The notes below the pieces were generated by a model that worked only from the letters and a program-made list of their open reading frames with translations, had not been told where the DNA came from and made no database searches. A program made the translations under genes and the position numbers. DNA of 64,000 nucleotides, from IMG/VR virus record IMGVR_UViG_3300005941_000003, positions 181,964 to 245,963 of that record; one strand, written 5' to 3'. Shown here one piece after another: positions 7,122 to 64,000 of this stretch; the first letter of the stretch is position 1; each line of letters begins with the position of its first letter.

Positions 7122-8630
7122 ATGAGAATATTAGGTATTTCTGGCGCGTTGAATCATGACGCAGCCGTTTCAGTGATTGAAGATGGTAAGATACTATTTG
7201 CATCACACAGTGAACGCTACAGTAAGATCAAGAATGATGCATTGTTAAACGATGGTATCATCAATGAAGCGTTGTCATATGGTAAGCCAGACCGTATTGC
7301 TTGGTTTGAGCGACCATTAAAGAAGAAGTACCGTCAGTTTCTAGCTGGACAATACGAACTTGCATTCGCAGGAAGTGAGTGGCCTAAATGGTATTTAAAT
7401 AAAAACTTCCCGCAGTTGAATGGTATCAAGATAGACTATCAAGATCACCACTACACTCACGCCGCAAGTGGTTACTATACGAGTGATTTCGATGATGCAT
7501 GTGTTGTTGTGATAGATTCAATAGGTGAGTTTGAAACTCTTACTATATGGCATGCCGAGGGTGAGCGTATGACTAAGATTTTCTCTCAAGAATATCCACA
7601 TTCAATTGGTCTTTGGTATAGTGCAATGACACAGCGTTTGGGATTGAAACCACAAGAAGATGAATACATTCTTATGGGTATGGCAGCGTATGGGGATAGC
7701 CGTAGGTTCTTCAAAGAAATTGTAGACGAATTCATACTTGTTGAGGGTATAGGATACTCACCGGAAACATACTTCAAACACAATCTTCATCGTGGGTGTT
7801 TGTGGTGGAAGCCAGAGTTAACGAGTGAGCAAGACTTGTTCGACATTGCTGCTGGTACACAAGCAGTGTACGAATATCTATTAAAGAACATCATTGCATG
7901 GTGTGTTAGAAACATTCCAAGCAGAAATCTTGTGATGATGGGCGGCTGTGCGCTAAACTGTAGCGCAAACTCAAAGATCACATATCAATATGATAATGTG
8001 TGGATCATGCCAAATCCGGGAGATGCTGGTAGTTGTATCGGTGCGTCACAACAATACTTTGATGATAGAATCAAGTGGGAAACTCCTTATCTAGGACATG
8101 AGATTAAAGGTCTATATCCTGTACAGAAAAGTTTAGAAGCATTGCTACGCGGAGAGATTATTGGTATCGCAAATGGTCGTGCAGAGTTTGGTCCACGTGC
8201 GCTAGGTAACCGCACTCTTACGGCAGATCCACGCGGGGACGATATTAAAGATCGTATGAATGAAATCAAACGTAGACAAAAGTTCCGTCCTTTTGCTCCA
8301 ATGATTCTAGAAGAACATGTTCACGAATACTTTGATATGCCACGACACATAAACGAATCACCATATATGCAGTTTGTTGCAACATGTAGATTCCCAGAAC
8401 TGTTCCCAGCAATCATACACAAAGATGGAACATCACGCGTACAGACCGTCAATCGTGAGCAACATCCGGGTCTGTATGAACTGCTAACGAAGTTCTACGA
8501 AGCGACAGGATGTCCTATCCTAGTCAATACATCACTGAATATCAAAGGAATGCCGATAGTCAATGACGAACAAGACGCAGAAGATTTTGCGAAGCACTAT
8601 GGCATTTCAGTCTTTACATCCGACGAATAA
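7122..8630 (+). CDS. Carbamoyltransferase, NodU/CmcH (TobZ-like) family
   Basis: ILGIS..HDAA, HHYTH, GGCALNC, EFGPRALGNR, FRPFAP, NTSLN. Confidence 0.95.
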   Translation: MRILGISGALNHDAAVSVIEDGKILFASHSERYSKIKNDALLNDGIINEALSYGKPDRIAWFERPLKKKYRQFLAGQYELAFAGSEWPKWYLNKNFPQLNGIKIDYQDHHYTHAASGYYTSDFDDACVVVIDSIGEFETLTIWHAEGERMTKIFSQEYPHSIGLWYSAMTQRLGLKPQEDEYILMGMAAYGDSRRFFKEIVDEFILVEGIGYSPETYFKHNLHRGCLWWKPELTSEQDLFDIAAGTQAVYEYLLKNIIAWCVRNIPSRNLVMMGGCALNCSANSKITYQYDNVWIMPNPGDAGSCIGASQQYFDDRIKWETPYLGHEIKGLYPVQKSLEALLRGEIIGIANGRAEFGPRALGNRTLTADPRGDDIKDRMNEIKRRQKFRPFAPMILEEHVHEYFDMPRHINESPYMQFVATCRFPELFPAIIHKDGTSRVQTVNREQHPGLYELLTKFYEATGCPILVNTSLNIKGMPIVNDEQDAEDFAKHYGISVFTSDE

Positions 8631-28055: not shown

Positions 28056-28598
28056 TTATACAGCCATTCGGACGTATTCTTCTGGCCATTGAAGGTAGTT
28101 CAACCATTTTTCATCCTTAACTGTGATGTGGAAGTTCTTACGGTTCAATACTTGGTAGAAGTTTGGTCGTGTTGGTTTTTTCTTTGGTACAATACGCGCA
28201 TTGTTACCCTTACTATGGTTACACGGTTTACATGCAGTTGTAATATTTTCCCAGTTTGTTTTACCACCACGCGATTTTGGTAGGACGTGATCAAGTGTCA
28301 AGTCCTTTGCATGGAATAAATCACCACAATATTGGCATACAAAACCGTCACGAATGTATACATTCTGACGGCTAAAGTTTACTCCTGATTGTGAAATTGG
28401 TATATATTCTTTAACAGATACCACAGAGGGAACTTTAAACGTTTGCCGGGAAGTATGAATCTCCCAACCTTTGTACCATTCAAGCACGTTGACGCGCTCT
28501 AGTACAACAAGTTTCATTGCTTCCTGCCACGTTAGTGTAGAAAGTGGAGTCACTGCCAGCGGTGAACCGTCTGCATTTAATAATAGTGTATCGCTCAT
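28056..28598 (-). CDS. HNH endonuclease (McrA-like)
   Basis: RDGFVCQYCG, TLDHVLPKSRGG, WENITTACKPCNHSKG. Confidence 0.9.
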   Translation of the reverse strand: MSDTLLLNADGSPLAVTPLSTLTWQEAMKLVVLERVNVLEWYKGWEIHTSRQTFKVPSVVSVKEYIPISQSGVNFSRQNVYIRDGFVCQYCGDLFHAKDLTLDHVLPKSRGGKTNWENITTACKPCNHSKGNNARIVPKKKPTRPNFYQVLNRKNFHITVKDEKWLNYLQWPEEYVRMAV

Positions 28599-28653: not shown

Positions 28654-29994
28654 TTAATTTTTGTAGTAGGTGTACTCACCAAATGGTGGGATGATATGGT
28701 CGGAACCGTGAATAACAAACAGCGTATCGCAATACGCCTCATTGCCCCAAGACCCGAACGGATAACCATCTGTGAACATAACGAACTTGCTAGGGTTGAT
28801 ATCGTTTTCTTCCATGAAAGTCCAGTTACATTCAAAGTCAGTGCCACCACAGCCGATGATTTCGTATTCGCGAATTTCCTCAGCATTGAATGGGGTGAAC
28901 ACCTTAACTGATTCAGAGTAGACCTGAGTATCAAAAGTCCAAACAGTCAGTTTGAAACTTTGGAACTGTTGCATGATGCCGTAAATCTCACCCATGAAAT
29001 CTTTAATCATTTCGTGAGAGATAGAACCCGAAACGTCGATACCAATCGCAGCCTCAACCTCAACATCGTTGTCAAGACCCGGCAGATAGATACCCATAGT
29101 ACGGGACTTGCGAGATTGCCGCATCCAAGTGAAATCACTTTTCAGAACGCTTTGAATACTCAGATTGAGATATTCACGCCAGTCCATCTTTGGTTCGGTC
29201 ATCTCCTTAATGATACGCTTGATATCACCCGGCATGTTTCCAGCGCCTGCGGTTTGTGCAGCCTGTAGTACAGCCTGCTTCATTTGATCCTTAATCGCCT
29301 TTGCTTCTTCCTTCGAAATCTTGATAGGTGCCTTGCGACCAGTAGGATCGTTCTCGCCAGAACCTTGTCCGTCACCATCACCAAACAAGTGTTGGTCTAG
29401 AGTTTCCTTACCGCCGTGAGCATTGGGATTTTTCTTTTGCTCTTCCTTGAGGTCTGCATAGATTTCTTCAGTATACTTGTCGTAGTATTTACGATCATAC
29501 AGCGCCTGCTTTGGCATCTTACCAATACGTGCCTCGACACATGCTTGGTTGACTTTATAGTCAGCCGCGATGTTCCAGAGTTTGGGATCACGATTGCTAT
29601 CGTCAAAATCCATCAAACGACCACCTTCGCCGCAGTGTTCATACACGCAGTGCATAACCTCGTGACCAACCACGAAGTCAATTTCTTCGGGCGTTAGAGT
29701 ACGGAAGAAGTCTGGGTTGTAGTAGAAGTGTTTACCGTCTACCGCAGCAGTCGGACACCAACCACCAGTTTCAACCAGTTTCAGACGAGTAGCAAGAGTG
29801 CCGAAGAACGGATGCTTGATCAGCATACGAACACGACCAGATACAATCATCTCCTTAACTTGAAGATCAGTATAATCGAATTCTACAATATCGTCAGAGT
29901 CGGAATCGACCTCGATACCATTTTCTTTCAAGATATCATCAAGAACAGCGTTGAAATCGTCTTCTGTTTTGATAGTGTCAGGTTTGACTTGCAT
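28654..29994 (-). CDS. Metallopeptidase-VWA domain protein (DUF2201-like), MoxR partner
   Basis: HEVMH (HExxH), MIDAS DVSGS, GGTDF, FTDG; ATG 29994 after GAAAGGA RBS. Confidence 0.85.
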   Translation of the reverse strand: MQVKPDTIKTEDDFNAVLDDILKENGIEVDSDSDDIVEFDYTDLQVKEMIVSGRVRMLIKHPFFGTLATRLKLVETGGWCPTAAVDGKHFYYNPDFFRTLTPEEIDFVVGHEVMHCVYEHCGEGGRLMDFDDSNRDPKLWNIAADYKVNQACVEARIGKMPKQALYDRKYYDKYTEEIYADLKEEQKKNPNAHGGKETLDQHLFGDGDGQGSGENDPTGRKAPIKISKEEAKAIKDQMKQAVLQAAQTAGAGNMPGDIKRIIKEMTEPKMDWREYLNLSIQSVLKSDFTWMRQSRKSRTMGIYLPGLDNDVEVEAAIGIDVSGSISHEMIKDFMGEIYGIMQQFQSFKLTVWTFDTQVYSESVKVFTPFNAEEIREYEIIGCGGTDFECNWTFMEENDINPSKFVMFTDGYPFGSWGNEAYCDTLFVIHGSDHIIPPFGEYTYYKN

Positions 29995-30024
29995 ATGATT
30001 CGTCCTTTCAGTCATTACTCTATT

Positions 30025-30052
30025 AATATAGCAGAGGATGCGGATATGTCAA
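30025..30052 (-). promoter_or_regulatory. Early promoter TTGACA-N16-TATATT (no GANTC in spacer)
   Basis: TTGACATATCCGCATCCTCTGCTATATT followed by AATAGAGTA as in the other copies. Confidence 0.75.
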
Positions 30053-30056
30053 GAAT

Positions 30057-30689
30057 TTATTTTCCATCTGGTAATTCTGACCAATCTTCACGTGATATTA
30101 GTGGTTTGTTTTCCCAAGTATCAAAGTAACCCTCTTCCACTTCATAATAAAAAAAGTTTTGGTATGCCTTCTTCACTGGTTTATCAATGACCCTGATCAT
30201 AAGGTCACTGTCCTTCCAACCATCATTAGCAGCATGAAATGCATGTTTTGCCCACTTCCACCAATTCTTTTCACTCTTGCCTGTTCGCGATTGCATACTG
30301 ACAAAGTATAGTTTATAGTTGTTTACTTCCATAAGTGGCTCAGTCATGTGAATCCGAGCAGTTTTATTCAGGTGTACGATACCAGATACGGTTGGTTGAC
30401 GATATTCTGGGAACACCCATAACCTATTCAGTGTGCGGGCAACGTGTTGCGGCCATAGACCAGATGCCATCACACCGGACATCATTATTGGGCTATCATC
30501 GAACTTACTATAAACTACCGAATACCCTCTTTGGTCCGCAAGGTCCATATTTTTTTCGGTATAGTTGTCAACTAGCCAATTGTTTTTTTCTTGTAGGCAT
30601 ATAGAACGCACTCTTTCAAATTCAGGAGTGTTGTCCCAATATATTTCATGATAACAGTTTTCTGGTAAAATGTAATCTTGTTTTAACAT
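30057..30689 (-). CDS. Hypothetical protein (weak GNAT-like signature)
   Basis: AAGGAG RBS; RTLNRLWVFPEYR. Confidence 0.55.
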   Translation of the reverse strand: MLKQDYILPENCYHEIYWDNTPEFERVRSICLQEKNNWLVDNYTEKNMDLADQRGYSVVYSKFDDSPIMMSGVMASGLWPQHVARTLNRLWVFPEYRQPTVSGIVHLNKTARIHMTEPLMEVNNYKLYFVSMQSRTGKSEKNWWKWAKHAFHAANDGWKDSDLMIRVIDKPVKKAYQNFFYYEVEEGYFDTWENKPLISREDWSELPDGK

Positions 30690-30707
30690 TTTTACTCCTT
30701 TGATACT

Positions 30708-30747
30708 ATTATACTAAAAAAAGAGGGAGAAGTCAACGACCTCTCCC
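30708..30747 (-). terminator. MoxR terminator overlapping a TTGACT-N17-TATAAT promoter
   Basis: GGGAGAGGTC-GTT-GACTTCTCCC stem plus T-tract; -35 in the loop/stem, -10 at 30708-30713. Confidence 0.65.
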
Positions 30748-30777
30748 AAGTTCATAATCAACAGAAAGGATTTTTTA

Positions 30778-31905
30778 TTATGCGTTATGTGCTTCGATGA
30801 TCAGTTTGCCGTACTTTTTGAAGAATTCTTCAATGCACGGAACTTTACGCGGTTCAAGCGGAAGTTTGTAGACCTTCAGTGCAGTACGACCACCAAGAAC
30901 AGTCATTTCAGTTTCAAAGTTGTCCATCATGAAACGGAAGAAGTTGTCTGCCATCTTGTAGAGTTCGTCCATCTTTTCCTTACCGTTACGATCAACGAAG
31001 TCCTTGAGTTCGTAACACATAGAAGCGGTGAGCGAGAACATCGCAGAGATTTCTTTTGCTTCGCGAGGAAGAGTTTTGACTTTGCCGTTCAGAATGTCAG
31101 TCGGGTTAGGAAGTTTACCAGCAACCGCACGGTGTGCCATGAACTTGGTTGCGATACCATCGCCAACAGTACCTGCAATCAGGTCGTGTAGACGACTAAC
31201 AGAGATAGCCTCACCTTCCTGAGGAAGCATCTGCGAAACGAAAGTCCAAGAACGCGGCGTAGCGAATGAACGTGATGCAGTGCGCGGATCAAAGTTGAAC
31301 AAGTCCATCTTGTTCGAAGTCAGATAACCCACAACCTCAGCATCAATCTTGCTTTCAAGTGCCCAAGTCTGCCAATCTTCAAAGTCAACACCCATTTCAA
31401 GGTGAACAAAGCGGTTAGCAAGCGGTGACGGCATACGATACGCAACACCACGGTCGCTTTCACGGTTACCAGCAGCAACGATCAGGACGTTCTCAGGGAG
31501 ACGGTAGTTACCTAGACGACGGTTCAGAATTAGCTGATACGCAGCAGCTTGAACCGACTGCGGTGCTTGGTTCATTTCGTCCAAGAACAGAACAACACAA
31601 TCGAATTGATCAGCAAGTTCCTGAGTAGGAAGATCAGAGGGTGGAGCCCACTCCATGCGACCAGTAACTTCGTTGTAGAACGGAATACCGCGAAGATCAG
31701 TCGGTTCCATCAGAGCAAGACGCAGGTCGATCATATAACCGGCACGTTCTTGCGTGATGCTTTCGACAATCTCAGATTTACCGATACCGGGAGGACCCCA
31801 GATGAAGACAGGACGCTTGCGATTGAACGCATAGTTGATTTCAGCACGAACATCGCTCGGACGAACAACGCGAACATCCATATCCTGAGTAGAAACTTTT
31901 GCCAT
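30778..31905 (-). CDS. MoxR-family AAA+ ATPase
   Basis: Walker A GPPGIGKS, Walker B LFLDE, AAGNR, LANRF, TPRSW. Confidence 0.9.
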   Translation of the reverse strand: MAKVSTQDMDVRVVRPSDVRAEINYAFNRKRPVFIWGPPGIGKSEIVESITQERAGYMIDLRLALMEPTDLRGIPFYNEVTGRMEWAPPSDLPTQELADQFDCVVLFLDEMNQAPQSVQAAAYQLILNRRLGNYRLPENVLIVAAGNRESDRGVAYRMPSPLANRFVHLEMGVDFEDWQTWALESKIDAEVVGYLTSNKMDLFNFDPRTASRSFATPRSWTFVSQMLPQEGEAISVSRLHDLIAGTVGDGIATKFMAHRAVAGKLPNPTDILNGKVKTLPREAKEISAMFSLTASMCYELKDFVDRNGKEKMDELYKMADNFFRFMMDNFETEMTVLGGRTALKVYKLPLEPRKVPCIEEFFKKYGKLIIEAHNA

Positions 31906-33985: not shown

Positions 33986-35014
33986 TTACACGTTATCCGC
34001 TTCATCTAAAACGCGATTAAATTCACGTAGACGTTTGACAACTGATTGGAAGTCAACGATTGTTGTCCAACGATCAATAAAGTATGTTAGTGAACCTTCT
34101 ACTCGTCCGAATGCATTTAGAACTTGAATAAGAACACCAAATGTGATTAACTGTGCAAAGTAACTATTTGCTAGTACTACTAGCGCAACGTTACCAGCAA
34201 GCATACCGAACGCTGTTTGCCATACGCTAAAGCCCATGTACCAGTTGAATAGACGATAGTAGTTACGTTTAACGGCTGCAAACATTGGGAACAAGTCTGA
34301 GGTCATACGCTCATTTAAATCGTCTTCGCTGTGTACTAGTTTCTTACGAAACTTTGCTTCGACTACTTGGTTGTTATATTCCAATCCTGGGAGTTTCAAA
34401 CCTAATAAGAATGAAAGTAGTGTACCACCGATACTTAGGGTAAGTGCAATCCATACTAAGAAGCCTGGGATAATCTTGTCGCCCCACACTGGTAAGCCTT
34501 CACTTAGATTCCATAGAATTGGTAAGAATGCTGCGAGTACGAAAATCTTCGATACAAAGCCAGTGAATAGACCCTGTAGCGTCTTGCCGAAAATCATCAA
34601 GTCTTCTTGAATACGCTGTGAACCACCTTCGATTGTAGCAGTTGATGCTTCCCAACGCTTCAAGTAATAATGAGTATTAGCTTCACGCCATGCAAATGTG
34701 TAACGCTGTGTTTGCCATGTTGAGTATGTCGCAATTGGAACGTAGATGATTAGAATTTCTAAGAAACTTGGAACAAGATTTCCAGAATCCATGTTCAATG
34801 ATGCGAAATCTATTAGTCTCGCAAAATTAAATCCCCAAAACAAATCCCAAAACTTTTCTTCTTGGAGAGTTTGCATTGCGTCATAGAAATCTCTGTTCCA
34901 CGCGTTGTAGTATACTAGAATTTGAACTGAATACCAACCTATGAATAGCAACCACGCCAACATTAGCCAAGCATACAGAAATTTATCTTTTGTCAAAAAG
35001 AAACTTTTGAGCAT
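33986..35014 (-). CDS. sbmA: SbmA/BacA-family peptide transporter
   Basis: Multi-TM; IEGGSQRIQED, LPGLEYNNQVVEAKFRKKLV..ED, NYYRLF, NAFGRV, W.TIV...KRLREF. Confidence 0.85.
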   Translation of the reverse strand: MLKSFFLTKDKFLYAWLMLAWLLFIGWYSVQILVYYNAWNRDFYDAMQTLQEEKFWDLFWGFNFARLIDFASLNMDSGNLVPSFLEILIIYVPIATYSTWQTQRYTFAWREANTHYYLKRWEASTATIEGGSQRIQEDLMIFGKTLQGLFTGFVSKIFVLAAFLPILWNLSEGLPVWGDKIIPGFLVWIALTLSIGGTLLSFLLGLKLPGLEYNNQVVEAKFRKKLVHSEDDLNERMTSDLFPMFAAVKRNYYRLFNWYMGFSVWQTAFGMLAGNVALVVLANSYFAQLITFGVLIQVLNAFGRVEGSLTYFIDRWTTIVDFQSVVKRLREFNRVLDEADNV

Positions 35015-39415: not shown

Positions 39416-40495
39416 TTACCAACCAATGCGTTCCCATGGAACGTCCTTATCACCGAAGTGCCCGTAAACACAATTCTTACTGTATTCGTGGAAGTTATAC
39501 ATATCAAAGCGACGAATAATACCAAGTGGTGTCAAGTCGATTTCACGTTCAATGAATTCCATAATACTACGGTCGTGACCATTCGATTCAACATAGATTG
39601 ATGTTGGTTCCTTAACACCGATAGCATAACTCAATTGGATTTTGCACCAATCAGCCATGTTATCCGCTACCACATTCTTTGCAAGCCAACGTGCCATGTA
39701 CGCTGCACTGCGATCAACCTTGGTTGGGTCTTTACCAGAGAACGCACCGCCACCGTGAGGTGCCATACCACCATATGTATCAACGATGATTTTACGTCCA
39801 GTGACACCAGCGTCACCATCCGGACCACCAATGACAAAATTACCAGTTGGATTAAGATGCCATATAGTTTTATCATCAATCAAATCACCGAGTACGTTTT
39901 GCGCTGCAAGTCTTGAAAGTTCACGCGCTGCTTCTACATTACCTTCAGTGTGTTGTGTAGACACAACAATCTGGTCAATACGCTTGACACGCCCGCCTTC
40001 GTATTGTACCGACACTTGAGACTTTGCATCCGGGCCTAAAATAGCACCACGATGATTTTTTAGTTCTTTTAGAATTTCATGTGAATAATAGATAGGCGCA
40101 GGCATTAGTGTTGGCGTTTCATTGGTGGCGTAACCAAACATAATACCCTGATCCCCTGCACCGAAGTCGTCAGTTCCAAGTGCAATGTCTGCGCTTTGTG
40201 AGTGAATTTCATTGTAGATGTTTAGATTTTCCCAATGAAATCCTTCTTGTTCATAACCAATCTCACGAACTTTATTTCGGACGATTTCTTTAACTTCTTC
40301 TTTCGATACATTAAAGTTTTTTACTTCGCCCGCCAACGTTACGTGATTGGTAGTTACAAGTGTTTCGATGGCAACGCGAGTAGTCTCGTCCCCATTCTTC
40401 AACCCAGCATCAACTAGGGCATCACTGATTTGGTCTGCAACCTTATCAGGGTGTCCATCGCTAACACTTTCGCTAGTAAAAATATAGTTGTTCAT
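39416..40495 (-). CDS. metK: S-adenosylmethionine synthetase
   Basis: FTSESVSDGHPDK, GAGDQG, GGGAFSGKDPTKVDRS. Confidence 0.98.
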   Translation of the reverse strand: MNNYIFTSESVSDGHPDKVADQISDALVDAGLKNGDETTRVAIETLVTTNHVTLAGEVKNFNVSKEEVKEIVRNKVREIGYEQEGFHWENLNIYNEIHSQSADIALGTDDFGAGDQGIMFGYATNETPTLMPAPIYYSHEILKELKNHRGAILGPDAKSQVSVQYEGGRVKRIDQIVVSTQHTEGNVEAARELSRLAAQNVLGDLIDDKTIWHLNPTGNFVIGGPDGDAGVTGRKIIVDTYGGMAPHGGGAFSGKDPTKVDRSAAYMARWLAKNVVADNMADWCKIQLSYAIGVKEPTSIYVESNGHDRSIMEFIEREIDLTPLGIIRRFDMYNFHEYSKNCVYGHFGDKDVPWERIGW

Positions 40496-40565: not shown

Positions 40566-41438
40566 TCAAGTCCCCCAGGCGTTCCCGAATAGAGATATGT
40601 GGAGTCTTGGTGTAAATCTGTATCCTTTTTGCATACAGATGTTTGCGACCTCTTGGACTGTGATATCATATCCTTCACTGCGCCCGCCCATTGGCATAAG
40701 ATAAACCGGACAATCGATGCCATGACTGCGATATTCTGCAACAGCGCGATCAACTTCCTCCACGTCTGTACGATCAGAGACAACAAATTTGAGATACAGA
40801 TTAGTACCCAAAGTAGTGATATAATTGTGTACGACATCAGGTCTAATAGCGTCTTCCCAACGTTCTCCAGAAACGGAGAGTTTAGGCGAGCATGAAAATG
40901 TGAATTTAATTCTCTTTTGGTTTCCAATGTAAGTTCGTAGACTTTCATGTAGAAACTGTGTGGAGTTTGTTTCGAATGTGACATTTTTCAAGTCCTTCAT
41001 TTTCGGATGTTCGAATAGTTCGATGTAAAGTTTCTGCCAAGCAAGTAGAGGTTCACCGCCAGTTAGAATTAGATGAACATCTTGTCCGTTATCTTGGATC
41101 CACTTACCTTCAGGTGTTAGACTGAGTAGTTGTTCGACAACTTCATCAATCGTCTTATCCATAACAAGGTGTCTAAATTCTGGGTAGATGCTTGCATACG
41201 TGTCACAGCCAGTATGAATGATTGGTAGTTCTTCAAACTTAGTAACACGATCCAAGATGCCAGTATTTAGTAGTTCTTCAACCTCTGGGTTGTAGTGTGT
41301 TTTTTCTCGTCCGCGTGGCAACCCAAAGTTCTGACATCGAAAGTTACATCCGAAGGTGCGAAGAAATACGCTGGGAACCCCAACGTACTGTCCTTCACCT
41401 TGCAGCGAATAGAATGCTTCTGAATATCTTAGTTTCAT
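40566..41438 (-). CDS. queE: 7-carboxy-7-deazaguanine synthase (radical SAM)
   Basis: E.FYSLQGEG..G.PSVFLR..GCNFRC...CDT, TGGEP, ETN, SPKL, PRLH. Confidence 0.9.
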   Translation of the reverse strand: MKLRYSEAFYSLQGEGQYVGVPSVFLRTFGCNFRCQNFGLPRGREKTHYNPEVEELLNTGILDRVTKFEELPIIHTGCDTYASIYPEFRHLVMDKTIDEVVEQLLSLTPEGKWIQDNGQDVHLILTGGEPLLAWQKLYIELFEHPKMKDLKNVTFETNSTQFLHESLRTYIGNQKRIKFTFSCSPKLSVSGERWEDAIRPDVVHNYITTLGTNLYLKFVVSDRTDVEEVDRAVAEYRSHGIDCPVYLMPMGGRSEGYDITVQEVANICMQKGYRFTPRLHISLFGNAWGT

Positions 41439-41606: not shown

Positions 41607-41726
41607 TTAAAAATATCCCATCATTGCTGAAATAGCAACAGGTCCGCCGACCATCATTAGCATAATAATCGTTAATGCTAGAGGAAGTCCTTTGCCTGTG
41701 CAGTAGTTTTCTTTATGGTCGTTCAT
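41607..41726 (-). CDS. 39-aa small membrane protein MNDHKENYCTGKGLPLALTII...
   Basis: ATG overlaps the folE stop (ATGA); single hydrophobic helix. Confidence 0.55.
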   Translation of the reverse strand: MNDHKENYCTGKGLPLALTIIMLMMVGGPVAISAMMGYF

Positions 41727-42424
41727 CGCGGTGCAAACTCCTGCTGTAGCTTAATGTTGTCAAAGAATTCTTGTTTAACATGTGGGTTATTGAAGAATGA
41801 ACCCTTTAGCACTGTTGTCTGTGTTAGTGAACTGTGTGCCATAATGCCACGATTTTCACAACAACCATGTGTCGCTTGAATGTAAACACCTACATCATTT
41901 GATCCAGTTGCTTTCATGATTTCACGTGCAATGTCCATTGCAAGTTCTTCTTGCAGTGTACCTCGTCTTGCACACCATTGTGCGATACGTGTATACTTGC
42001 TTAGACCAATCAATTTGTCTGCTGCAATGATACCAATGTATGCAACACCTTTAACTGGTTGGTGATGGTGTGAACAAACACTTGTGAGTTCACTGCGAAC
42101 AACTAGCATGCCTTCATATTTTTCGTTTGTGATATTGTCAGGTTCATTTGGAAATGCAGTTGCATTTGGAGCAGGATTGTATCGTCCTGACATAAGTTCG
42201 TTGACATACATCTTTGCAAGTCTACGACCTGTATCCATGCTATTTGGATCGGTATGACGATCAATTACGAGAGAATCTAGAATACCTTCGAATCCCTCGG
42301 TTAGTTCATCAATTATCATGTCATATTCTTCTGGCATAATGAAGTTTGCAATATTATCGCCTGCCCAATATCGTGCGCCAGCTTCTTCGATCCGGTGTTT
42401 AATAATTTCGGAAGTCTTTCTCAT
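41723..42424 (-). CDS. folE: GTP cyclohydrolase I
   Basis: CSHHH, IGLSKY.RI, RR..LQE, HGC...RG. Confidence 0.95.
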   Translation of the reverse strand: MRKTSEIIKHRIEEAGARYWAGDNIANFIMPEEYDMIIDELTEGFEGILDSLVIDRHTDPNSMDTGRRLAKMYVNELMSGRYNPAPNATAFPNEPDNITNEKYEGMLVVRSELTSVCSHHHQPVKGVAYIGIIAADKLIGLSKYTRIAQWCARRGTLQEELAMDIAREIMKATGSNDVGVYIQATHGCCENRGIMAHSSLTQTTVLKGSFFNNPHVKQEFFDNIKLQQEFAPR

Positions 42425-58328: not shown

Positions 58329-58605
58329 TTTTTAAACTCTCCACCCATTTGTCATAACCAATTTCAAATGGTTCGATAGGAAATGCTAAAGTCCAAGTCT
58401 GCTGTGCTTCAATGGGTTCGGCGTACTGCATGTGTAGCAACACGATACCCCGCTTTGGTTTCCATTCGAATTCTACAGGATCAATGTCACTTTTATAACC
58501 TTCAGGTGTGCTACAAATTTTACGCGCAATCTGAATAAGTTCTTTTTGTTTGAACTTAGGCTTGTATGCTTGTTGTGGGAATTTTGTTTTATAGGGTCCG
58601 GTCAT
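58315..58605 (-). CDS. Hypothetical protein
   Basis: 96-aa ORF overlapping neighbours. Confidence 0.55.
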   Translation of the reverse strand: MTGPYKTKFPQQAYKPKFKQKELIQIARKICSTPEGYKSDIDPVEFEWKPKRGIVLLHMQYAEPIEAQQTWTLAFPIEPFEIGYDKWVESLKNENT

Positions 58606-60136
58606 CTTCTAATAATTTTCTCTTATAAGTGTTGACTAAAGTTGATTCTACCATGTCTTTTTCTAATAGGTATGTAGACAGGTCATCGAATTCTTTCCTT
58701 GACATTTTTAGTAAGTCATCGTATTCTAAATTTGGTTTATAAACTTTAACCAGTGGCCATAATCTATGCAAGTTAAATCCGCCCTGAATTGCTCGGTTAC
58801 TGCGCTTCACCGCTTCTATGTATCTTGCATATAGTTGCAGAGTTTCCTGTCTAGATTTCACAGGACCGATGTGATTATGCCATTCAAGCGGGTCATCTTT
58901 CCAATAAAATCCATACTTTTCGGATTCTAATTGATATTTACTCACATTTGGATATTGTTCCGGTATTATTAGTGTTTTGGGATCTTGTATTATCAGTGGA
59001 TGTGGGACAACTTGATTTACTAAATTGTTTTCGTCTAAAATCCATTTTAGTGTTTCTTCGTGTGATTCGTAGGTTTCATGTGGTAAACCAATAAGTAATG
59101 TGATGGCTACTTTAACTTTGTCCTTCCAATCTACTGATGTGAGCCTATGAAGTAGCTCTTTTACTTTATCTGGGTGAATGCCCTTACCAATTTCTTTTGC
59201 CGCTTGATAGTGAAATGTTTCTACTCCAAAAAATGTAGACGTTAACCCCATTTCCTGTAACTGTTGAATTTGATCTTGGTGTGCGTTCAACAAGTCAAGT
59301 CTCAAAAATGCAGAAAAGTTCATTTTAAATGGCAATGAAGAAAAAGTTTTGTACAATTCATCTAGTTTGTATTGGCTATCGTTGAAAGTATCATCCACAA
59401 AGATGTACTTATCCATGCCATACTTTTCGTAATTTTCTATTAACTCATCCCGTAACAGCGATTGATCTTTTATGTAATCTAACTTCTTCTTACCTTTAAG
59501 CGCAAAACTACAAAATTTACAATTGAATATGCAACCTCTGCCTATTTCTAGTATGGGAACTTCATTTTTCAATATGTAGTCATGTTCCACATATGAAGTT
59601 TTACTTTTTGAGAAAAAACTCTGTTCACCCACTACATTATTATAAATTGAAGTATTTCTAACAATACTATTTTCTAACGGTTTCGGCGTATTATTGAACA
59701 CGTGTTCTAGATATTTTTTAGAATCACTTTCTGAAAAGCCTTCGAAAATGGCATCAACTTTGGGGAAGTTTTCTCTCAGAAAAATTCTCACACTAGGACC
59801 ACCAGCTATGACTTTTATGTTTGGGTTTATATTTTTTGAAAATTCAATTATTAGTTTTGAAATTTTAGAAAGCTGTTGCAAGATATGGTTTGGATAAAAT
59901 TCCCAATATGCTGCGCCAATCCCAACAACTTTGGTATCAGATGAAACATATTTTTTGATTGCTCTCTCTAATTCTTCATGGCTCATATTGTATATGTAAT
60001 CAATTACTTGAGTTGAAAAACCTATAGAACGAAAATGTGAGGCTATACTATAAGATCCCCAACTGCGAGATCCCAGCCCATTCATATCAACTCTACTTTC
60101 CGAGAATATAACAATATCTGACATTTTTGAATTCAT
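58589..60136 (-). CDS. Cobalamin (B12)-binding radical SAM protein
   Basis: N-terminal B12-binding-like region (IAGGP), RGCIFNCKFC, VDDTFN, GVET, IGLPHET. Confidence 0.88.
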   Translation of the reverse strand: MNSKMSDIVIFSESRVDMNGLGSRSWGSYSIASHFRSIGFSTQVIDYIYNMSHEELERAIKKYVSSDTKVVGIGAAYWEFYPNHILQQLSKISKLIIEFSKNINPNIKVIAGGPSVRIFLRENFPKVDAIFEGFSESDSKKYLEHVFNNTPKPLENSIVRNTSIYNNVVGEQSFFSKSKTSYVEHDYILKNEVPILEIGRGCIFNCKFCSFALKGKKKLDYIKDQSLLRDELIENYEKYGMDKYIFVDDTFNDSQYKLDELYKTFSSLPFKMNFSAFLRLDLLNAHQDQIQQLQEMGLTSTFFGVETFHYQAAKEIGKGIHPDKVKELLHRLTSVDWKDKVKVAITLLIGLPHETYESHEETLKWILDENNLVNQVVPHPLIIQDPKTLIIPEQYPNVSKYQLESEKYGFYWKDDPLEWHNHIGPVKSRQETLQLYARYIEAVKRSNRAIQGGFNLHRLWPLVKVYKPNLEYDDLLKMSRKEFDDLSTYLLEKDMVESTLVNTYKRKLLEDDRTL

Positions 60137-60161
60137 ATTGATATTTAGCTACTGCCAAATA

Positions 60162-61244
60162 TCATTCCCAGCACCATGGCATTAAATTTTTACTATTCAA
60201 GTTTCGTTTGGCGTCCAATGTTTCTAGATAGTTTTTTAATTTTTTATTTAGAGTATCATCGTACTCGTGGTGGTTTTCTATGTAGTAATCTATGTTTTTA
60301 ACACCTATAGGCTTCAAATTTTTTAGTGCATTAAAGCCTAGATAATTTGGATTATGTAAAATGTTATTTCTGCGTCTTATATGATTTTGTTTACAAAACT
60401 CTATGATTTCATTATGTTGATATAGATTTAACGCACTCCAAGTTATATTAAACGCTAGATTCCAATTGTTCTCTTTTATAATGTCAACATTTTTTAAATA
60501 TTGATCCCAATCGGTTGGGTATCTTATGTAGTTTGCTAACTCACCTACACCATCTAAACTTAACATTATTGATATTTTTCGGAAACGCTTTAACAATTCT
60601 ATCCATTTGTTGTTCAACCCGTTCCCATTGCTGACGAATATTAATTCAGTATTTTCAGTATTCCATACATTAGCCGAAAGTCGTTCTATGAAATCAAACG
60701 TATTCTTGCTATAAAATGGTTCACCGCCCAATAGGTTTATCTCAATTGCGGTGTTTCTGCATTCATTTAATATGTCGTCAATGTCTGATGTTTTTCGGGT
60801 AAAATGTTCTACAATATTTGTATCATTGAATTGGTTGTAAATGTCTAAATCTTCGTTCCATTTACTGCTGTTACTAGGGTTACACATTATACATTTTAGA
60901 TTACAAACGTTATCAAACCGTAGATCCCATACTAATTTTTTGGTTTCAAAGTGGTTTATATGTCTGTACCACATGCTCTGCCTGTAGCTGCGTTCTCCGG
61001 CGCTTTCGTCTAGTTTACAAATCGTACAGGTGGAAGGCCAACGCTTTTCTAGAAAAGCATTTTGGGTTTCTTCTATAATTTTATGATTTTTTAATTCTTT
61101 ATAGGTATCAACATACTCTGGTGGGGTAACAGTTGACATGCAACAAGGCTTAACAGAGTAACCTTTTGGGTCTTTTACTACGTATTGGTTGATAAAAGGC
61201 AGAGAACATCCGTAGTGTTCTTGCAACTGTTTTAAATCTTTCAT
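60162..61244 (-). CDS. Radical SAM protein with N-terminal twitch-like domain
   Basis: CSLPF..PCC, CTIC, CNLKCIMC, LGGEP; true start ATG 61244 (the track's extension runs through tRNA-Glu). Confidence 0.88.
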   Translation of the reverse strand: MKDLKQLQEHYGCSLPFINQYVVKDPKGYSVKPCCMSTVTPPEYVDTYKELKNHKIIEETQNAFLEKRWPSTCTICKLDESAGERSYRQSMWYRHINHFETKKLVWDLRFDNVCNLKCIMCNPSNSSKWNEDLDIYNQFNDTNIVEHFTRKTSDIDDILNECRNTAIEINLLGGEPFYSKNTFDFIERLSANVWNTENTELIFVSNGNGLNNKWIELLKRFRKISIMLSLDGVGELANYIRYPTDWDQYLKNVDIIKENNWNLAFNITWSALNLYQHNEIIEFCKQNHIRRRNNILHNPNYLGFNALKNLKPIGVKNIDYYIENHHEYDDTLNKKLKNYLETLDAKRNLNSKNLMPWCWE

Positions 61245-61282
61245 GATGATATATCTTTCATGATGATATTTAGTATAATGAT

Positions 61283-61357
61283 TGGTAGCCCGTAGGGGAA
61301 TCGAACCCCTCTTTCTAGGTTGAAAACCTAGCGTCCTAACCGATAGACGAACGGGCC
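61283..61357 (-). tRNA. tRNA-Glu(TTC)
   Basis: Cloverleaf, CTAGG-TTTTCAA-CCTAG, GTTCGA, encoded CCA. Confidence 0.93.
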
Positions 61358-61429
61358 ATAAAAGATATACTATAACTGTTATCACTTTCCACAAACGGTA
61401 CCGGTATTTGTCATAGTATATCTTATTAA

Positions 61430-61504
61430 TGGCGGACTGTACGGGAATCGAACCCGTCTCCCTCGCGTGACAGGCGAGAATTCTAACCGATAAACCAACA
61501 GTCC
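61430..61504 (-). tRNA. tRNA-Asp(GTC)
   Basis: CTCGC-CTGTCAC-GCGAG, G73, CCA. Confidence 0.93.
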
Positions 61505-61513
61505 TTTATTTAA

Positions 61514-61540
61514 TGCTCTAACCAACTGAGCTACAACCGC
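61514..61540 (-). pseudogene. Orphan tRNA 5' fragment (acceptor strand and D-arm)
   Basis: GCGGTTGTAGCTCAGTTGGTTAGAGCA then abrupt AT-rich sequence. Confidence 0.7.
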
Positions 61541-61549
61541 AATTAAAAA

Positions 61550-61626
<77 letters not shown>

Positions 61627-61766
61627 GTGTTTAAAAATTTAGAATGTCTTGGGAAGTTTCGGTGATACGCACTTCATACTCTAAGTAAGGTTACGTCACA
61701 TAAATGTAGTTTAAATGTTAGTCTCTCCTAACAGTCACGCCGTCAACTGACGTTTGGAAACTTTAA

Positions 61767-62027
61767 TTATACACGCTTTGCTGTATATTGGAACACACCA
61801 TAATTTAATGGCGCGCCGAATTTCTTTCTTGCTTTCGCAAGTGCTGCTTCTTCGTTTGCTTCAATAACTGAACCTAGATTTTCAACACCAGCAGTGATGT
61901 TAAATGTAAACATTGGCGCAGCCTCTGCTTCGACAGTTTTTGTAATTGTTTTTTTACGTGTAGATACGTTTTTAGTAGGAGCCGCTTTCGCCGACACTCT
62001 TTTTGCTAAACCTGTACGCTTGATCAT
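61767..62027 (-). CDS. Small basic hypothetical protein (86 aa)
   Basis: ATG 62027, GGGAGA RBS, late-promoter motif at 62056; K/R-rich N-terminus. Confidence 0.65.
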   Translation of the reverse strand: MIKRTGLAKRVSAKAAPTKNVSTRKKTITKTVEAEAAPMFTFNITAGVENLGSVIEANEEAALAKARKKFGAPLNYGVFQYTAKRV

Positions 62028-62081
62028 GACTTTCTCCCATAAAGAACTTATACGGTATTTATCTGATTTGAGAAAGTGAAA

Positions 62082-62157
62082 TGGTGGGAGATAAGAGACT
62101 CGAACTCCTGACATTCTCGGTGTAAACGAGACGCTCTACCAACTGAGCTAATCTCCC
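62082..62157 (-). tRNA. tRNA-Val(TAC)
   Basis: TCTCG-TTTACAC-CGAGA, CCA. Confidence 0.93.
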
Positions 62158-62235
62158 TAAAGCAGTGACTTTTGTGATTGTTTCAACGGGAAGTATGTTA
62201 CCCGAATGGCATAGTCAAATCATATGCTAGGAATT

Positions 62236-62310
62236 TGGAGCGGGCGATGAGATTCGAACTCACGACCCTCACCTTGGCAAGGTGACGCTCTACCACTGAG
62301 CTACGCCCGC
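62236..62310 (-). tRNA. tRNA-Gly(GCC)
   Basis: TCACC-TTGCCAA-GGTGA, U73, CCA. Confidence 0.95.
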
Positions 62311-62327
62311 TTATACGTTTATTTATA

Positions 62328-63068
62328 CTATTCTTTCTTTTTAATCAATGATATGATCATTCCTGCTAAATCTGGGAAAGGATAGGTTGCCAAATACGGT
62401 TTTTCGTGATGAATTGCATGATAACCATCGCCTCCTGCAATAAATGCAAGTAATATGTTGTCTTTCGGTCCATTTTCATTGTGTAAAAGAGAATTCACTA
62501 GTGAACCCATACTTAACGCAAGAAACGGAGGGAAAAAGTATAAAGCATAAAGCAACTTAGGATCAATCAATGAAACTATTGCAATATGAAAAAGTATAAT
62601 ATATACATAGTATGTATGAAAGAATACTATACCTTTTTCTGATTTAAGTTTTTCAGATTCTTCGGAGATAGCCACACCCTGTGGGTAATCAAACCATGAT
62701 ATAAAAAATACTTTTAAAATACCTTTATACGTTGGTGAATGTGGATCATATTGTGTATCTGAGTATTTGTGATGCGCTAGATGCATTCTTCTCCACTCTA
62801 ATACACTACCGATAGATAATACTGTTGTTAAGTAACATAAAACATAGTGCCAAAAGATGTTTAGTTTAAAACTTCTATGGCTGAAATATCTATGGTGACC
62901 TACAATTTGACCAATTATAGCTAACACATAGCCGACTAAAAGACTGTATACCCATTGTTCTAATGTTAAAAAATAAAAAGAAAATGGTAAACTTAGTACC
63001 ATAGCATATTGAAACCAGCCATGTCTAGTATATGTAGTTTCTTTTGTGAACGGCAAGCGATACTTCAT
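62328..63068 (-). CDS. Membrane fatty-acid desaturase (delta-9-like)
   Basis: His boxes HHRYFSH, HLAHH, HAIHH; DPHSP; TM helices. Confidence 0.9.
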   Translation of the reverse strand: MKYRLPFTKETTYTRHGWFQYAMVLSLPFSFYFLTLEQWVYSLLVGYVLAIIGQIVGHHRYFSHRSFKLNIFWHYVLCYLTTVLSIGSVLEWRRMHLAHHKYSDTQYDPHSPTYKGILKVFFISWFDYPQGVAISEESEKLKSEKGIVFFHTYYVYIILFHIAIVSLIDPKLLYALYFFPPFLALSMGSLVNSLLHNENGPKDNILLAFIAGGDGYHAIHHEKPYLATYPFPDLAGMIISLIKKKE

Positions 63069-63087
63069 ACAATTTCCAGTATATGTT

Positions 63088-63161
63088 TGGTGGAGAATAC
63101 GAGAATCGAACTCGTGATTCTAGAATGCAAATCTAGCGTGATCCCGCTTCACCAATTCCCC
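63088..63161 (-). tRNA. tRNA-Ala(TGC)
   Basis: CTAGA-TTTGCAT-TCTAG, G3:U70 pair, CCA. Confidence 0.9.
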
Positions 63162-63261
63162 ACTTTTCTGAAATTTGCCTTTCTATTAAAGGCGTAACTT
63201 CATTTTTATATTTACTGTGAACCATTTCATGATGATTTGGACACAGAGGTATTAAATTTTT
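63162..63261 (-). pseudogene. C-terminal remnant of an HNH endonuclease gene
   Basis: Spacer translates to KNLIPLCPNHHEMVHSKYKNEVTPLIERQISEK with no start codon for the N-terminal part. Confidence 0.7.
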
Positions 63262-63346
63262 TGGTGCGGATAGAGGGACTTGAACCCCCACGAGTTACCC
63301 CGCTAGAACCTAAATCTAGTGCGTCTACCAATTTCGCCATATCCGC
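63262..63346 (-). tRNA. tRNA-Leu(TAG)
   Basis: CTAGA-TTTAGGT-TCTAG, long variable arm, CCA. Confidence 0.95.
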
Positions 63347-63356
63347 ATAAGAAGAA

Positions 63357-63474
63357 TGGTGCCCTCACACGGACTCGAACCGCGGACCTGATGATTACGA
63401 AAACACACCTTGTGAACCTATCGTTATCGCGTGTGCTTTCAAATCAACTGCTCTACCAACTGAGCTATAAGGGC
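63357..63474 (-). tRNA. tRNA-Thr (TGT or CGT) interrupted by a 42-nt hairpin in the anticodon loop (63399-63440)
   Basis: GCCCTTA acceptor, D-arm, GTTCGA T-arm and ACCA intact; removing the insert restores GTTGA-TTTGTAA-TCATC. Confidence 0.85.
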
Positions 63475-63543
63475 ATTATCTTCGTATATAATTATTTAGC
63501 ATTTAGAACGAAAAGTTGTTCCTAATACGCTAAAATTTAAATT

Positions 63544-63736
63544 TTATCTATACGATCTACCTTTACCTATGTTTTTGTTTTTATAGGTTTCCGTCTGACT
63601 GTGACAATTTGGGCAAATTAATCGTAAGTTTTCAGGTGTATTGTTTTTGTGATTGCCATCAATATGATCGCATTCTAAAACGATTGGTTTACCCTGCCAT
63701 TCGCTTATACCACAACATTCACATGAATAACCTCGT
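63544..63736 (-). pseudogene. N-terminally truncated HNH endonuclease
   Basis: CECCG..W....LECDHIDGNHKNN.PENLRLICPNCHSQT; no credible start; fused to a tRNA 5' half. Confidence 0.8.
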
Positions 63737-63762
63737 TGCTCTACCAACTGAGCTATAAGGGC
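63737..63762 (-). repeat. 26-nt exact duplicate of the tRNA-Thr 5' half (other copy 63449-63474)
   Basis: GCCCTTATAGCTCAGTTGGTAGAGCA at both sites. Confidence 0.9.
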
Positions 63763-63767
63763 CAATT

Positions 63768-63857
63768 TGGCGGAGAGGGTGGGATTTGAACCCACGGTAG
63801 ACTTTCGCCTACGCCGGTTTTCAAGACCGGTGCAATCAACCACTCTGCCACCCCTCC
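63768..63857 (-). tRNA. tRNA-Ser(TGA)
   Basis: CCGGT-CTTGAAA-ACCGG, long variable arm, G73, CCA. Confidence 0.95.
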
Positions 63858-63862
63858 AATAT

Positions 63863-63938
63863 TGGCTCCCAGAGACGGGCTCGAACCGCCGACCCAATGA
63901 TTAACAGTCATTTGCTCTACCGACTGAGCTATCTGGGA
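63863..63938 (-). tRNA. tRNA-Asn(GTT)
   Basis: AATGA-CTGTTAA-TCATT, G73, CCA. Confidence 0.95.
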
Positions 63939-64000
63939 ATAAAAATTTGTCTATTGTTCACCAGGCAATAGACAAAAACGGCTTTGTATAGGTGACCCTC

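Follow-up and report, generated by a model that had tools for sequence, protein, structure and literature searches.

The closest described counterparts of the locus examined here are the 'enigmatic introns' in tRNAs of Lak megaphages (Devoto et al. 2019, PMC6784885). These are non-group-I inserts in the anticodon loops of tRNA genes of very large phages, including a tRNA-Thr(TGT); they are present or absent between related genomes, identical where shared, have no Rfam match and are unexplained in mechanism. The Lak inserts are 79-114 nt long and lie 3' of the anticodon, at or next to position 37/38 (Table S6 of that study). The intervening sequences of bacterial 23S rRNA are hairpin insertions that lengthen a native helix, are scattered among close strains and are cut out of the transcript by RNase III (PMC8708148, PMC4990558); they are 100-200 nt or longer and the rRNA pieces are not rejoined. 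[quoted passage not shown] The protein-spliced tRNA introns of archaea and eukaryotes (PMC4090602) are short, some at non-canonical positions, and are removed by an endonuclease plus a ligase. Finally, in phage T4 the HNH gene mobA and the 50-nt bypass insert of gene 60 form, or once formed, a mobile element in which the insert is tolerated by ribosome hopping in an mRNA, whilst SegB exemplifies the free-standing endonucleases that live in phage tRNA clusters and drive inheritance of neighbouring tRNA genes (10.1101/2022.08.31.505936; PMC2988022).

We analysed a 64,000-nt stretch of the virus record IMGVR_UViG_3300005941_000003 (hereafter the window), in which a complete tRNA-Thr(UGU) gene with encoded CCA carries a 42-nt hairpin within its anticodon (Table 1). 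Rfam's tRNA model matches 63360-63474 (- strand) end to end at 53.2 bits, with one 44-nt local insertion in the anticodon loop. Default ARAGORN finds nine tRNA genes in the array and misses this one; with introns allowed it calls tRNA-Thr(tgt) with a 42-nt intron. As a census tool the intron mode was of little use, since most of its calls were merged neighbouring genes or class II variable arms. The inverted repeat GAAAGCACAC-N22-GTGTGTTTTC (10 bp, one G.U) lies at + strand 63399-63440 and is the only copy in the window, against 0.02 expected by chance. The minimum-free-energy fold (z-score -3.7) stacks the hairpin on the anticodon stem through U32-A38 and U33-A37. The observation made in the original prediction, a hairpin of 42 nt inside the anticodon of an otherwise intact tRNA-Thr, with the anticodon buried in an extended helix, is therefore confirmed. 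One refinement is required: comparison with a diverged homologue (see below) places the junctions one base to the right of those first proposed, and the alternative CGT anticodon is not supported.

Table 1. Positions of the interrupted tRNA gene, its parts and its surroundings in the window.
Position	Strand	Feature	Description
63357..63474	-	Interrupted tRNA-Thr(UGU) gene with encoded CCA	118 nt = 76 + 42
63440..63474	-	5' exon	tRNA positions 1-35 (ends ...U33 U34 G35)
63398..63439	-	42-nt intervening hairpin	Within the window alone can equally be written 63399-63440; 5' arm 63431-63439, 22-nt loop 63409-63430, 3' arm plus two exon-pairing bases 63398-63408
63357..63397	-	3' exon	tRNA positions 36-76 (starts U36 A37 A38)
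63390..63448	-	Predicted extended anticodon arm	Helix of about 19 bp from G27-C43 to i9-i32, with a U28.U42 mismatch and a bulged U36; exon-insert junctions at its centre, offset by 2 bp with 3' overhangs
63737..63762	-	26-nt duplicate of the 5' end of tRNA-Thr	Positions 1-26; remnant of a first tRNA-Thr copy, ending exactly where the anticodon stem would start
63544..63750	-	5'-truncated HNH endonuclease ORF	About 66 aa, HNH domain only; fused to the tRNA-Thr fragment
63139..63264	-	Second HNH remnant	C-terminal ~40 aa, between tRNA-Leu and tRNA-Ala
61283..63938	-	10-gene tRNA array	Asn, Ser, Thr (interrupted), Leu(UAG), Ala, Gly, Val, Pro, Asp, Glu; no second tRNA-Thr

The window belongs to an uncultured marine jumbo phage of ~342 kb. 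It encodes a family B DNA polymerase whose best match, at 49% identity, is that of Sinorhizobium phage Phosso (46% to Agrobacterium phage Atu_ph07), as well as thymidylate synthase, DHFR, SAM synthetase, many radical SAM enzymes and HNH endonucleases. No DNA-level match to cultured phages was found. The same sequence is assembled as contigs of about 342-369 kb from many marine and estuarine samples. Full contigs are IMGVR_UViG_3300027757_000397 and Ga0208439_1000001, and the phage is abundant in the samples behind runs X1-X13. A locus of the same phage on a 342-kb contig (L123) extends 7 kb past the window end and adds no further tRNA.

The insert is not an assembly artefact. Seven loci from IMG/VR, JGI and ENA are 100% identical to the window over the 3 kb around the gene, and Logan contigs of DNA sequencing runs from 2017 (X7), 2021 (X14) and 2024 (X18) cover the whole interrupted gene with no difference; in total the insert is seen in three strain backgrounds. 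After removal of the 42 nt, the central 30-mer occurs exactly in more than 120 IMG/VR contigs. Among 119 such genes, one, at 1241-1316 of an unrelated 42-kb phage contig (L062), is 76/76 identical to the joined exons. The decisive comparison is with L303, a 2.7-kb ENA contig of a near-identical phage, whose desaturase gene is 98.4% identical to that of the window and which has the same array order but two plain tRNA-Thr(UGU) genes. The second of these (823-898) aligns almost base for base, including its 55-nt upstream spacer, its 10-nt downstream spacer and tRNA-Leu; within the tRNA the only difference is a clean 42-nt gap, and the remaining 76 nt are identical. The insert is thus a presence/absence polymorphism among near-identical phages. 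There is no target-site duplication. Attempts to extend the synteny through desaturase homologues at 39-71% identity gave contigs that were too short or carried different tRNAs.

A metagenome scan using the conserved flanks with a free gap located a diverged homologue in L159, a 13.6-kb contig with 18 or more tRNAs, and in its 99.7% identical twin L160. Just upstream of tRNA-Leu(UAG), as in the window, L159 has a tRNA (Rfam 55.3 bits) with a 42-nt insert at the same place. The D arm, anticodon stem and variable loop are identical to those of the window, whereas the acceptor and T stems are different. The arms plus junction bases of the insert are 16/20 identical but the 22-nt loop only 5/22 (Fisher p = 5e-4). 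Six pairs in the acceptor and T stems have changed on both sides and still pair; 98.9% of cells are paired, which 0 of 500 shuffles reach. Of the 17 pairs counted in the extended helix, 13 are invariant, three have changed on one side but still pair (including i42, G to A, opposite U34) and one is broken in L159; 97.6% of cells are paired. Only two sequence variants exist, so the helix has no both-sided covariation. The neighbouring tRNA-Leu genes are only 72.5% identical and the spacers cannot be aligned. The loop therefore looks neutral and saturated, whilst the arms, the length and the cloverleaf look selected, which argues against an inert pseudogene. We note, however, that the L160 copy has clustered damaging changes in its 5' half, which looks like decay.

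Within the window alone the junctions can be written as 34/35 or 35/36, because a G is repeated. With 34/35 junctions L159 would read UAU and with 33/34 junctions CAU; neither core exists as an uninterrupted gene in IMG/VR (0 hits), and L303 and L062 equal the UGU product. With 35/36 junctions both the window and L159 give the invariant ...GAUUUG|UAAUC... core of tRNA-Thr(UGU), and all four differences between the two inserts then fall inside the insert. We consider 35/36, between the second and third anticodon bases (G35/U36), the likely placement, although our assignment relies on the L159 copy still encoding Thr, and it is possible that L159 carries a mutated anticodon.

In the predicted folds of both sequences U32 pairs with A38 and U33 with A37, U36 is bulged, U34 pairs with the last insert base (G in the window, A in L159), G35 pairs with the penultimate insert base, C, and the first insert base lies opposite the third-from-last (A-U in the window, C.U in L159), with eight more pairs following. 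There are roughly nine pairs on each side of the junctions. The 5' junction (G35|i1) and the 3' junction (i42|U36) are offset by two base pairs, such that each product of a cut there would carry a 2-nt 3' overhang. RNase III cuts in this manner. The sense strand folds 4-7 kcal/mol better than the antisense strand, because of G.U pairs, which mildly favours selection on the transcript. A consensus scan found no intrinsic terminator or promoter in the hairpin.

With these features in hand the locus can be compared with the systems above. Like the Lak introns, it is a non-group-I insert in the anticodon loop of a large-phage tRNA and is polymorphic between genomes, but it is shorter, lies inside the anticodon and is a simple hairpin continuing the anticodon stem; we saw no sequence similarity. 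It resembles the rRNA intervening sequences in prolonging a native helix into a long predicted double-stranded stem and in its sporadic presence (absent from the syntenic gene of L303, present in the window strain and in the strain of runs X14 and X18), and its predicted junction geometry fits RNase III; a tRNA cut inside its anticodon would, however, need ligation to decode. A group I intron is ruled out by size, by a permissive Rfam scan (E <= 1) of 63000-64000, which gave only tRNA and chance hits with no Intron_gpI match, and by the requirement for U at -1 together with G as the last intron base: in the 35/36 frame -1 is G and the last base is G in the window but A in L159, whereas in the 34/35 frame -1 is U but the last base is C. 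No bulge-helix-bulge is seen, since the folds of both the window and L159 show a continuous helix with a single 1-nt bulge, and a cut at the canonical 37/38 position would give UGA on a class I Thr body, whilst the empty-site alleles place the insert at 34/35 or 35/36. No EndA-like endonuclease, RNase III, RNA ligase, RtcB or kinase domain was found among window ORFs of 150 aa or more, a sample that covers only about a fifth of the genome and none of the host. A miniature transposable element (MITE/REP-like) is also ruled out: inverted repeats are present, but there is a single copy and no target duplication, and a hairpin-only pattern search of IMG/VR and GTDB genomes returned only unrelated coding or terminator sites, with no copy outside tRNA-Thr. 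An IS608-type TTAC target fits the window by chance but not L159. A tRNA pseudogene defined by loss of cloverleaf pairing or identity elements does not fit either, as all stems are intact and the exons are identical to working-type genes.

The surroundings of the gene carry traces of homing-endonuclease traffic. The first HNH remnant (Pfam HNH and HNH_3) lies 70 nt upstream of the gene, where L303 has its complete first tRNA-Thr(UGU). It is 55% identical to residues 93-160 of the 173-aa HNH at L303 2016-2537 and lacks about 90 N-terminal residues; homologues of 125 and 176 aa have N-terminal extensions (homologues in two further loci, L025 and L063). The second remnant is 74% identical over 42 aa (tblastx) to the C-terminus of a full 193-aa HNH at L159 7596-8177. 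In the window genome both tRNA-Thr anticodon arms are destroyed at the DNA level, one being deleted from position 27 on and the other split at 35/36. The arm sequence is invariant in 119 phage genes, which makes it an attractive homing-endonuclease target, although this is suggestive only. A strict cassette of the mobA/gene 60 type is not supported: the adjacent endonuclease gene is truncated, the strain in X14 and X18 keeps the insert but lacks both HNH remnants (depth zero over the second), and L303 has a full-length HNH of the same family beside two intact tRNA-Thr genes.

Other interrupted phage tRNAs were also found. L159 carries a Leu-like class II tRNA with a 47-nt hairpin insert, and at least eight IMG/VR contigs contain 41-56-nt inserts sharing a small hairpin followed by ACAGCA(A), with up to three per array. 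Membership of the present insert in this family is not supported: the window lacks the motif and has an outer stem that those inserts lack, and the 7-mer that L159 shares with another locus, L250, is within chance. The RNase III-like stagger was not reproduced in the interrupted tRNA of L220, nor in the Leu-like tRNA of L159 if its product is Leu(UAA).

Our preferred, though tentative, explanation is that the 42 nt are an RNA-level intervening sequence. What the analysis shows is that the insertion is exact, with exons equal to an intact gene, that it is present or absent among near-identical phages, that a homologous copy sits at the same site in a diverged phage with conserved arms, a free loop and a cloverleaf kept by compensatory changes, and that the predicted RNA is a tRNA with a lengthened anticodon arm. 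What we infer is that the gene is transcribed with the insert and that the hairpin is then cut out of the pre-tRNA, possibly by a double-strand-specific RNase III-type enzyme of host or phage. Such a cut would leave G35-3'OH and 5'-phosphate-U36 in the anticodon loop, ends that an ATP-dependent ligase of the Rnl1/Rnl2 type can seal without end-healing, restoring tRNA-Thr(UGU); jumbo phages commonly encode ligases that need 5'-phosphate and 3'-OH ends (PMC7824862). Also inferred is that at the DNA level the split anticodon arm is a plausible homing-endonuclease target in arrays full of HNH genes, which may explain how the insert spreads or persists. Consistent with a gene still in use, without proving it, ACA is the preferred Thr codon (45% of Thr codons), the array's other U34 tRNAs (Ser UGA, Leu UAG, Ala UGC, Pro UGG, Val UAC, Glu UUC) match the phage's preferred A-ending codons, and the array offers no other tRNA-Thr. 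The proposal rests on no RNA evidence: three metatranscriptome runs contained few of the sampled words (8-14%), and one of them yielded phage mRNA-region contigs but nothing informative over the tRNA. Moreover, the 2-nt stagger depends on the 35/36 frame, a helix of about 19 bp with a mismatch and a bulge is at the short end for RNase III substrates, and religation is never seen for rRNA intervening sequences.

The interpretation offered in the original prediction is partly supported. It proposed a non-canonical mini-intron needing an unknown nuclease plus RNA ligase, a conditionally activated tRNA, or an unspliced tRNA mimic or decoy against anticodon nucleases. Its anatomy is right, including the intact Thr body, the exclusion of group I and bulge-helix-bulge introns and the UGA product of a cut at 37/38. 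The refuting condition set beforehand, an insert unique to this genome with no spliced or stable RNA (a simple pseudogene) or one unsupported by reads, is not fulfilled, since the insert occurs in other genomes, is supported by many data sets and has a diverged homologue with conserved arms; this argues against a simple pseudogene and for a selected element, and fits the mini-intron reading. The polymorphism, the 35/36 junctions, the RNase III-like geometry and the homing-endonuclease traffic are additional to it.

The most serious rival, somewhat less likely than our preferred reading, is that the gene is dead or merely tolerated. In this view the hairpin is a DNA-level insertion that inactivates tRNA-Thr and is never removed from the RNA, persisting because it destroys a homing-endonuclease target (immunity), because it hitch-hikes by recombination through the invariant exon core, or simply because the phage tRNA is dispensable. 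No enzyme system for such inserts is known in bacteria or phages, both anticodon arms in the window are destroyed (the first exactly at 26/27 next to an HNH gene), HNH genes and remnants pervade both arrays, presence/absence polymorphism is as expected of selfish elements, the L160 copy is damaged, and T4 mobA with gene 60 provides a precedent. On the other hand, a target-breaking insert needs no conserved arms or length, yet both are kept while the loop is saturated, and the cloverleaf stayed perfect through six compensatory changes. The occurrence of the insert without the adjacent HNH segment, the truncation of that HNH and the coexistence in L303 of a full-length HNH with two intact tRNA-Thr genes also speak against it, and the widely sampled window strain would then have no phage tRNA for its commonest Thr codon.

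It is less likely that the insert is excised by a dedicated, still unknown phage nuclease, with or without end-healing and RtcB or another ligase, and without RNase III. The same comparative evidence applies, and the 3' arm is conserved in sequence (10/10) beyond what pairing needs, which suggests sequence-specific recognition; further, the other phage tRNAs with 41-56-nt inserts have no long outer stem and so cannot be RNase III substrates of this kind, and the Lak introns are likewise unexplained. Against this, no candidate enzyme was found in the 64-kb window and no bulge-helix-bulge or other known nuclease motif is present. Least likely is that the unspliced RNA is itself the product, as a decoy or sponge for anticodon nucleases or tRNA-binding factors or as a reserve tRNA activated only under some condition, for although the cloverleaf and extended helix are conserved, the anticodon is buried and jumbo phages invest heavily in countering tRNA-targeting defences (PMC7824862), the exons remain identical to a working tRNA-Thr including anticodon bases that a decoy would not need, near-identical phages keep two plain tRNA-Thr genes instead, and no anticodon nuclease with tRNA-Thr as its main target is known to us.

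Textbooks hold that bacterial-type tRNA genes are interrupted only by self-splicing group I introns; Lak megaphages raised the first doubt but gave no structure or mechanism. The present case is a real, exact and polymorphic hairpin insertion, apparently maintained in evolution, and is small and clean enough to yield a concrete biochemical prediction, namely that RNase III cuts after G35 and after the last insert base and an Rnl-type ligase then seals the break. Were this to hold, which on present evidence we consider unlikely though not excluded, phages, and hence bacterial cells, would possess a protein-dependent tRNA splicing route that needs no dedicated splicing endonuclease, a kind of tRNA splicing not yet described in bacteria or phages, and it may be one case of a wider set of about 40-55-nt inserts in phage tRNA anticodon loops. 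It would define a new tRNA maturation route, give the 'RNA repair' ligases of large phages a housekeeping substrate beyond repair, and link tRNA gene interruption to homing-endonuclease warfare in phage tRNA arrays. If the RNA is not spliced, the case still shows how phage tRNA genes are disabled and exchanged in nature. Many more interrupted phage tRNAs are missed by default tRNA finders, and phage tRNA counts and codon-usage inferences are therefore biased.

The array that carries the homologue of the interrupted tRNA-Thr in the diverged phage (contig L159) contains a second interrupted tRNA. This gene is class II and Leu-like, with a 47-nt long-hairpin insert. Only a 34/35 junction gives Leu(UAA), which is the classical group I site CUU/.../AAAA, but there is no intron core. 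We also observed phage tRNAs with 41-56-nt anticodon-loop inserts at eight loci (L198, L230, L250, L255, L266, L269, L291 and L293), which scored 43-58 bits against the Rfam tRNA model. These inserts share a 6-8-bp hairpin followed by (U/C)AACAGCA(A), with up to three per array. Default tRNA finders miss them and no uninterrupted counterparts were found among the loci examined. One of these loci, L230, is a tRNA-rich phage contig of 94 kb within which sits a permuted tmRNA (Rfam RF04321, 56.8 bits). A different arrangement is seen in two contigs of 86 and 127 kb (L132 and L144), where a tRNA-Asn(GUU)-like gene has a 30-nt insert 5′ of the anticodon and sits directly after an intact tRNA-Asn.

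In the window, a 26-nt 5′ fragment of tRNA-Thr is fused to a truncated HNH ORF and a second HNH remnant, corresponding to the C-terminus, lies between tRNA-Leu and tRNA-Ala. Both are missing from the strain seen in DNA runs X14 and X18. The roughly 1-kb non-coding stretch upstream of the tRNA array, seen in the longer contig of the same phage (L123), contains a pair of 54-nt direct repeats that are 89% identical.

The window also contains at least eleven radical SAM ORFs, several with SPASM or B12-binding domains. Nearby genes encode SAM synthetase, GTP cyclohydrolase I, a carbamoyltransferase, cytidylyltransferases and a phosphomannomutase; this is an unusually dense radical-SAM island for a phage. 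A phage-encoded SbmA/BacA-like inner-membrane transporter was identified by its Pfam match (E = 8e-77). A DUF2201 metallopeptidase/VWA protein lies near a MoxR-like AAA ATPase, and a full HNH_5 endonuclease is also present.

Locations of the features in the window and in the compared contigs
Sequence	Position	Feature
Window	1982-25055, 40566-41438, 58589-61250	Radical SAM ORFs
Window	7122-8630	Carbamoyltransferase
Window	28056-28598	Full HNH_5 endonuclease
Window	28654-31905	DUF2201 metallopeptidase/VWA protein near a MoxR-like AAA ATPase
Window	33986-35014	SbmA/BacA-like inner-membrane transporter
Window	39416-40495	SAM synthetase
Window	41723-42424	GTP cyclohydrolase I
Window	63139-63264	HNH C-terminal remnant
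Window	63290-63310	tRNA-Leu(UAG) variable arm
Window	63544-63750	Truncated HNH ORF
Window	63737-63762	tRNA-Thr 5′ fragment
L123	6560-6800 (about 250-500 nt beyond the window end)	54-nt direct repeats
L132	1367-1469	tRNA-Asn(GUU)-like gene with insert
L144	146-248	tRNA-Asn(GUU)-like gene with insert
L159	9675-9806	Leu-like tRNA with insert
L159	11592-11709	Interrupted tRNA
L160	1490-1607	Interrupted tRNA
L230	4623-4908	Permuted tmRNA
L269	3833-4185	Example of tRNAs with hairpin and (U/C)AACAGCA(A) inserts
L293	4606-5175	Example of tRNAs with hairpin and (U/C)AACAGCA(A) inserts
L303	940-960	tRNA-Leu(UAG) variable arm

The variable arm of tRNA-Leu(UAG) differs between the window and contig L303, from a near-identical phage, by a block of changes that mostly keeps the arm paired (GGGGTAACTC in L303 against GCCGCAAGGC in the window), while the rest of the gene is identical. 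L159 and its twin contig L160 are 99.7% identical; six of the ten differences between them fall within 20 nt of the 5′ half of the interrupted tRNA, where they break the D stem and the 2-71 pair. This looks like a recombination or repair patch rather than random drift.
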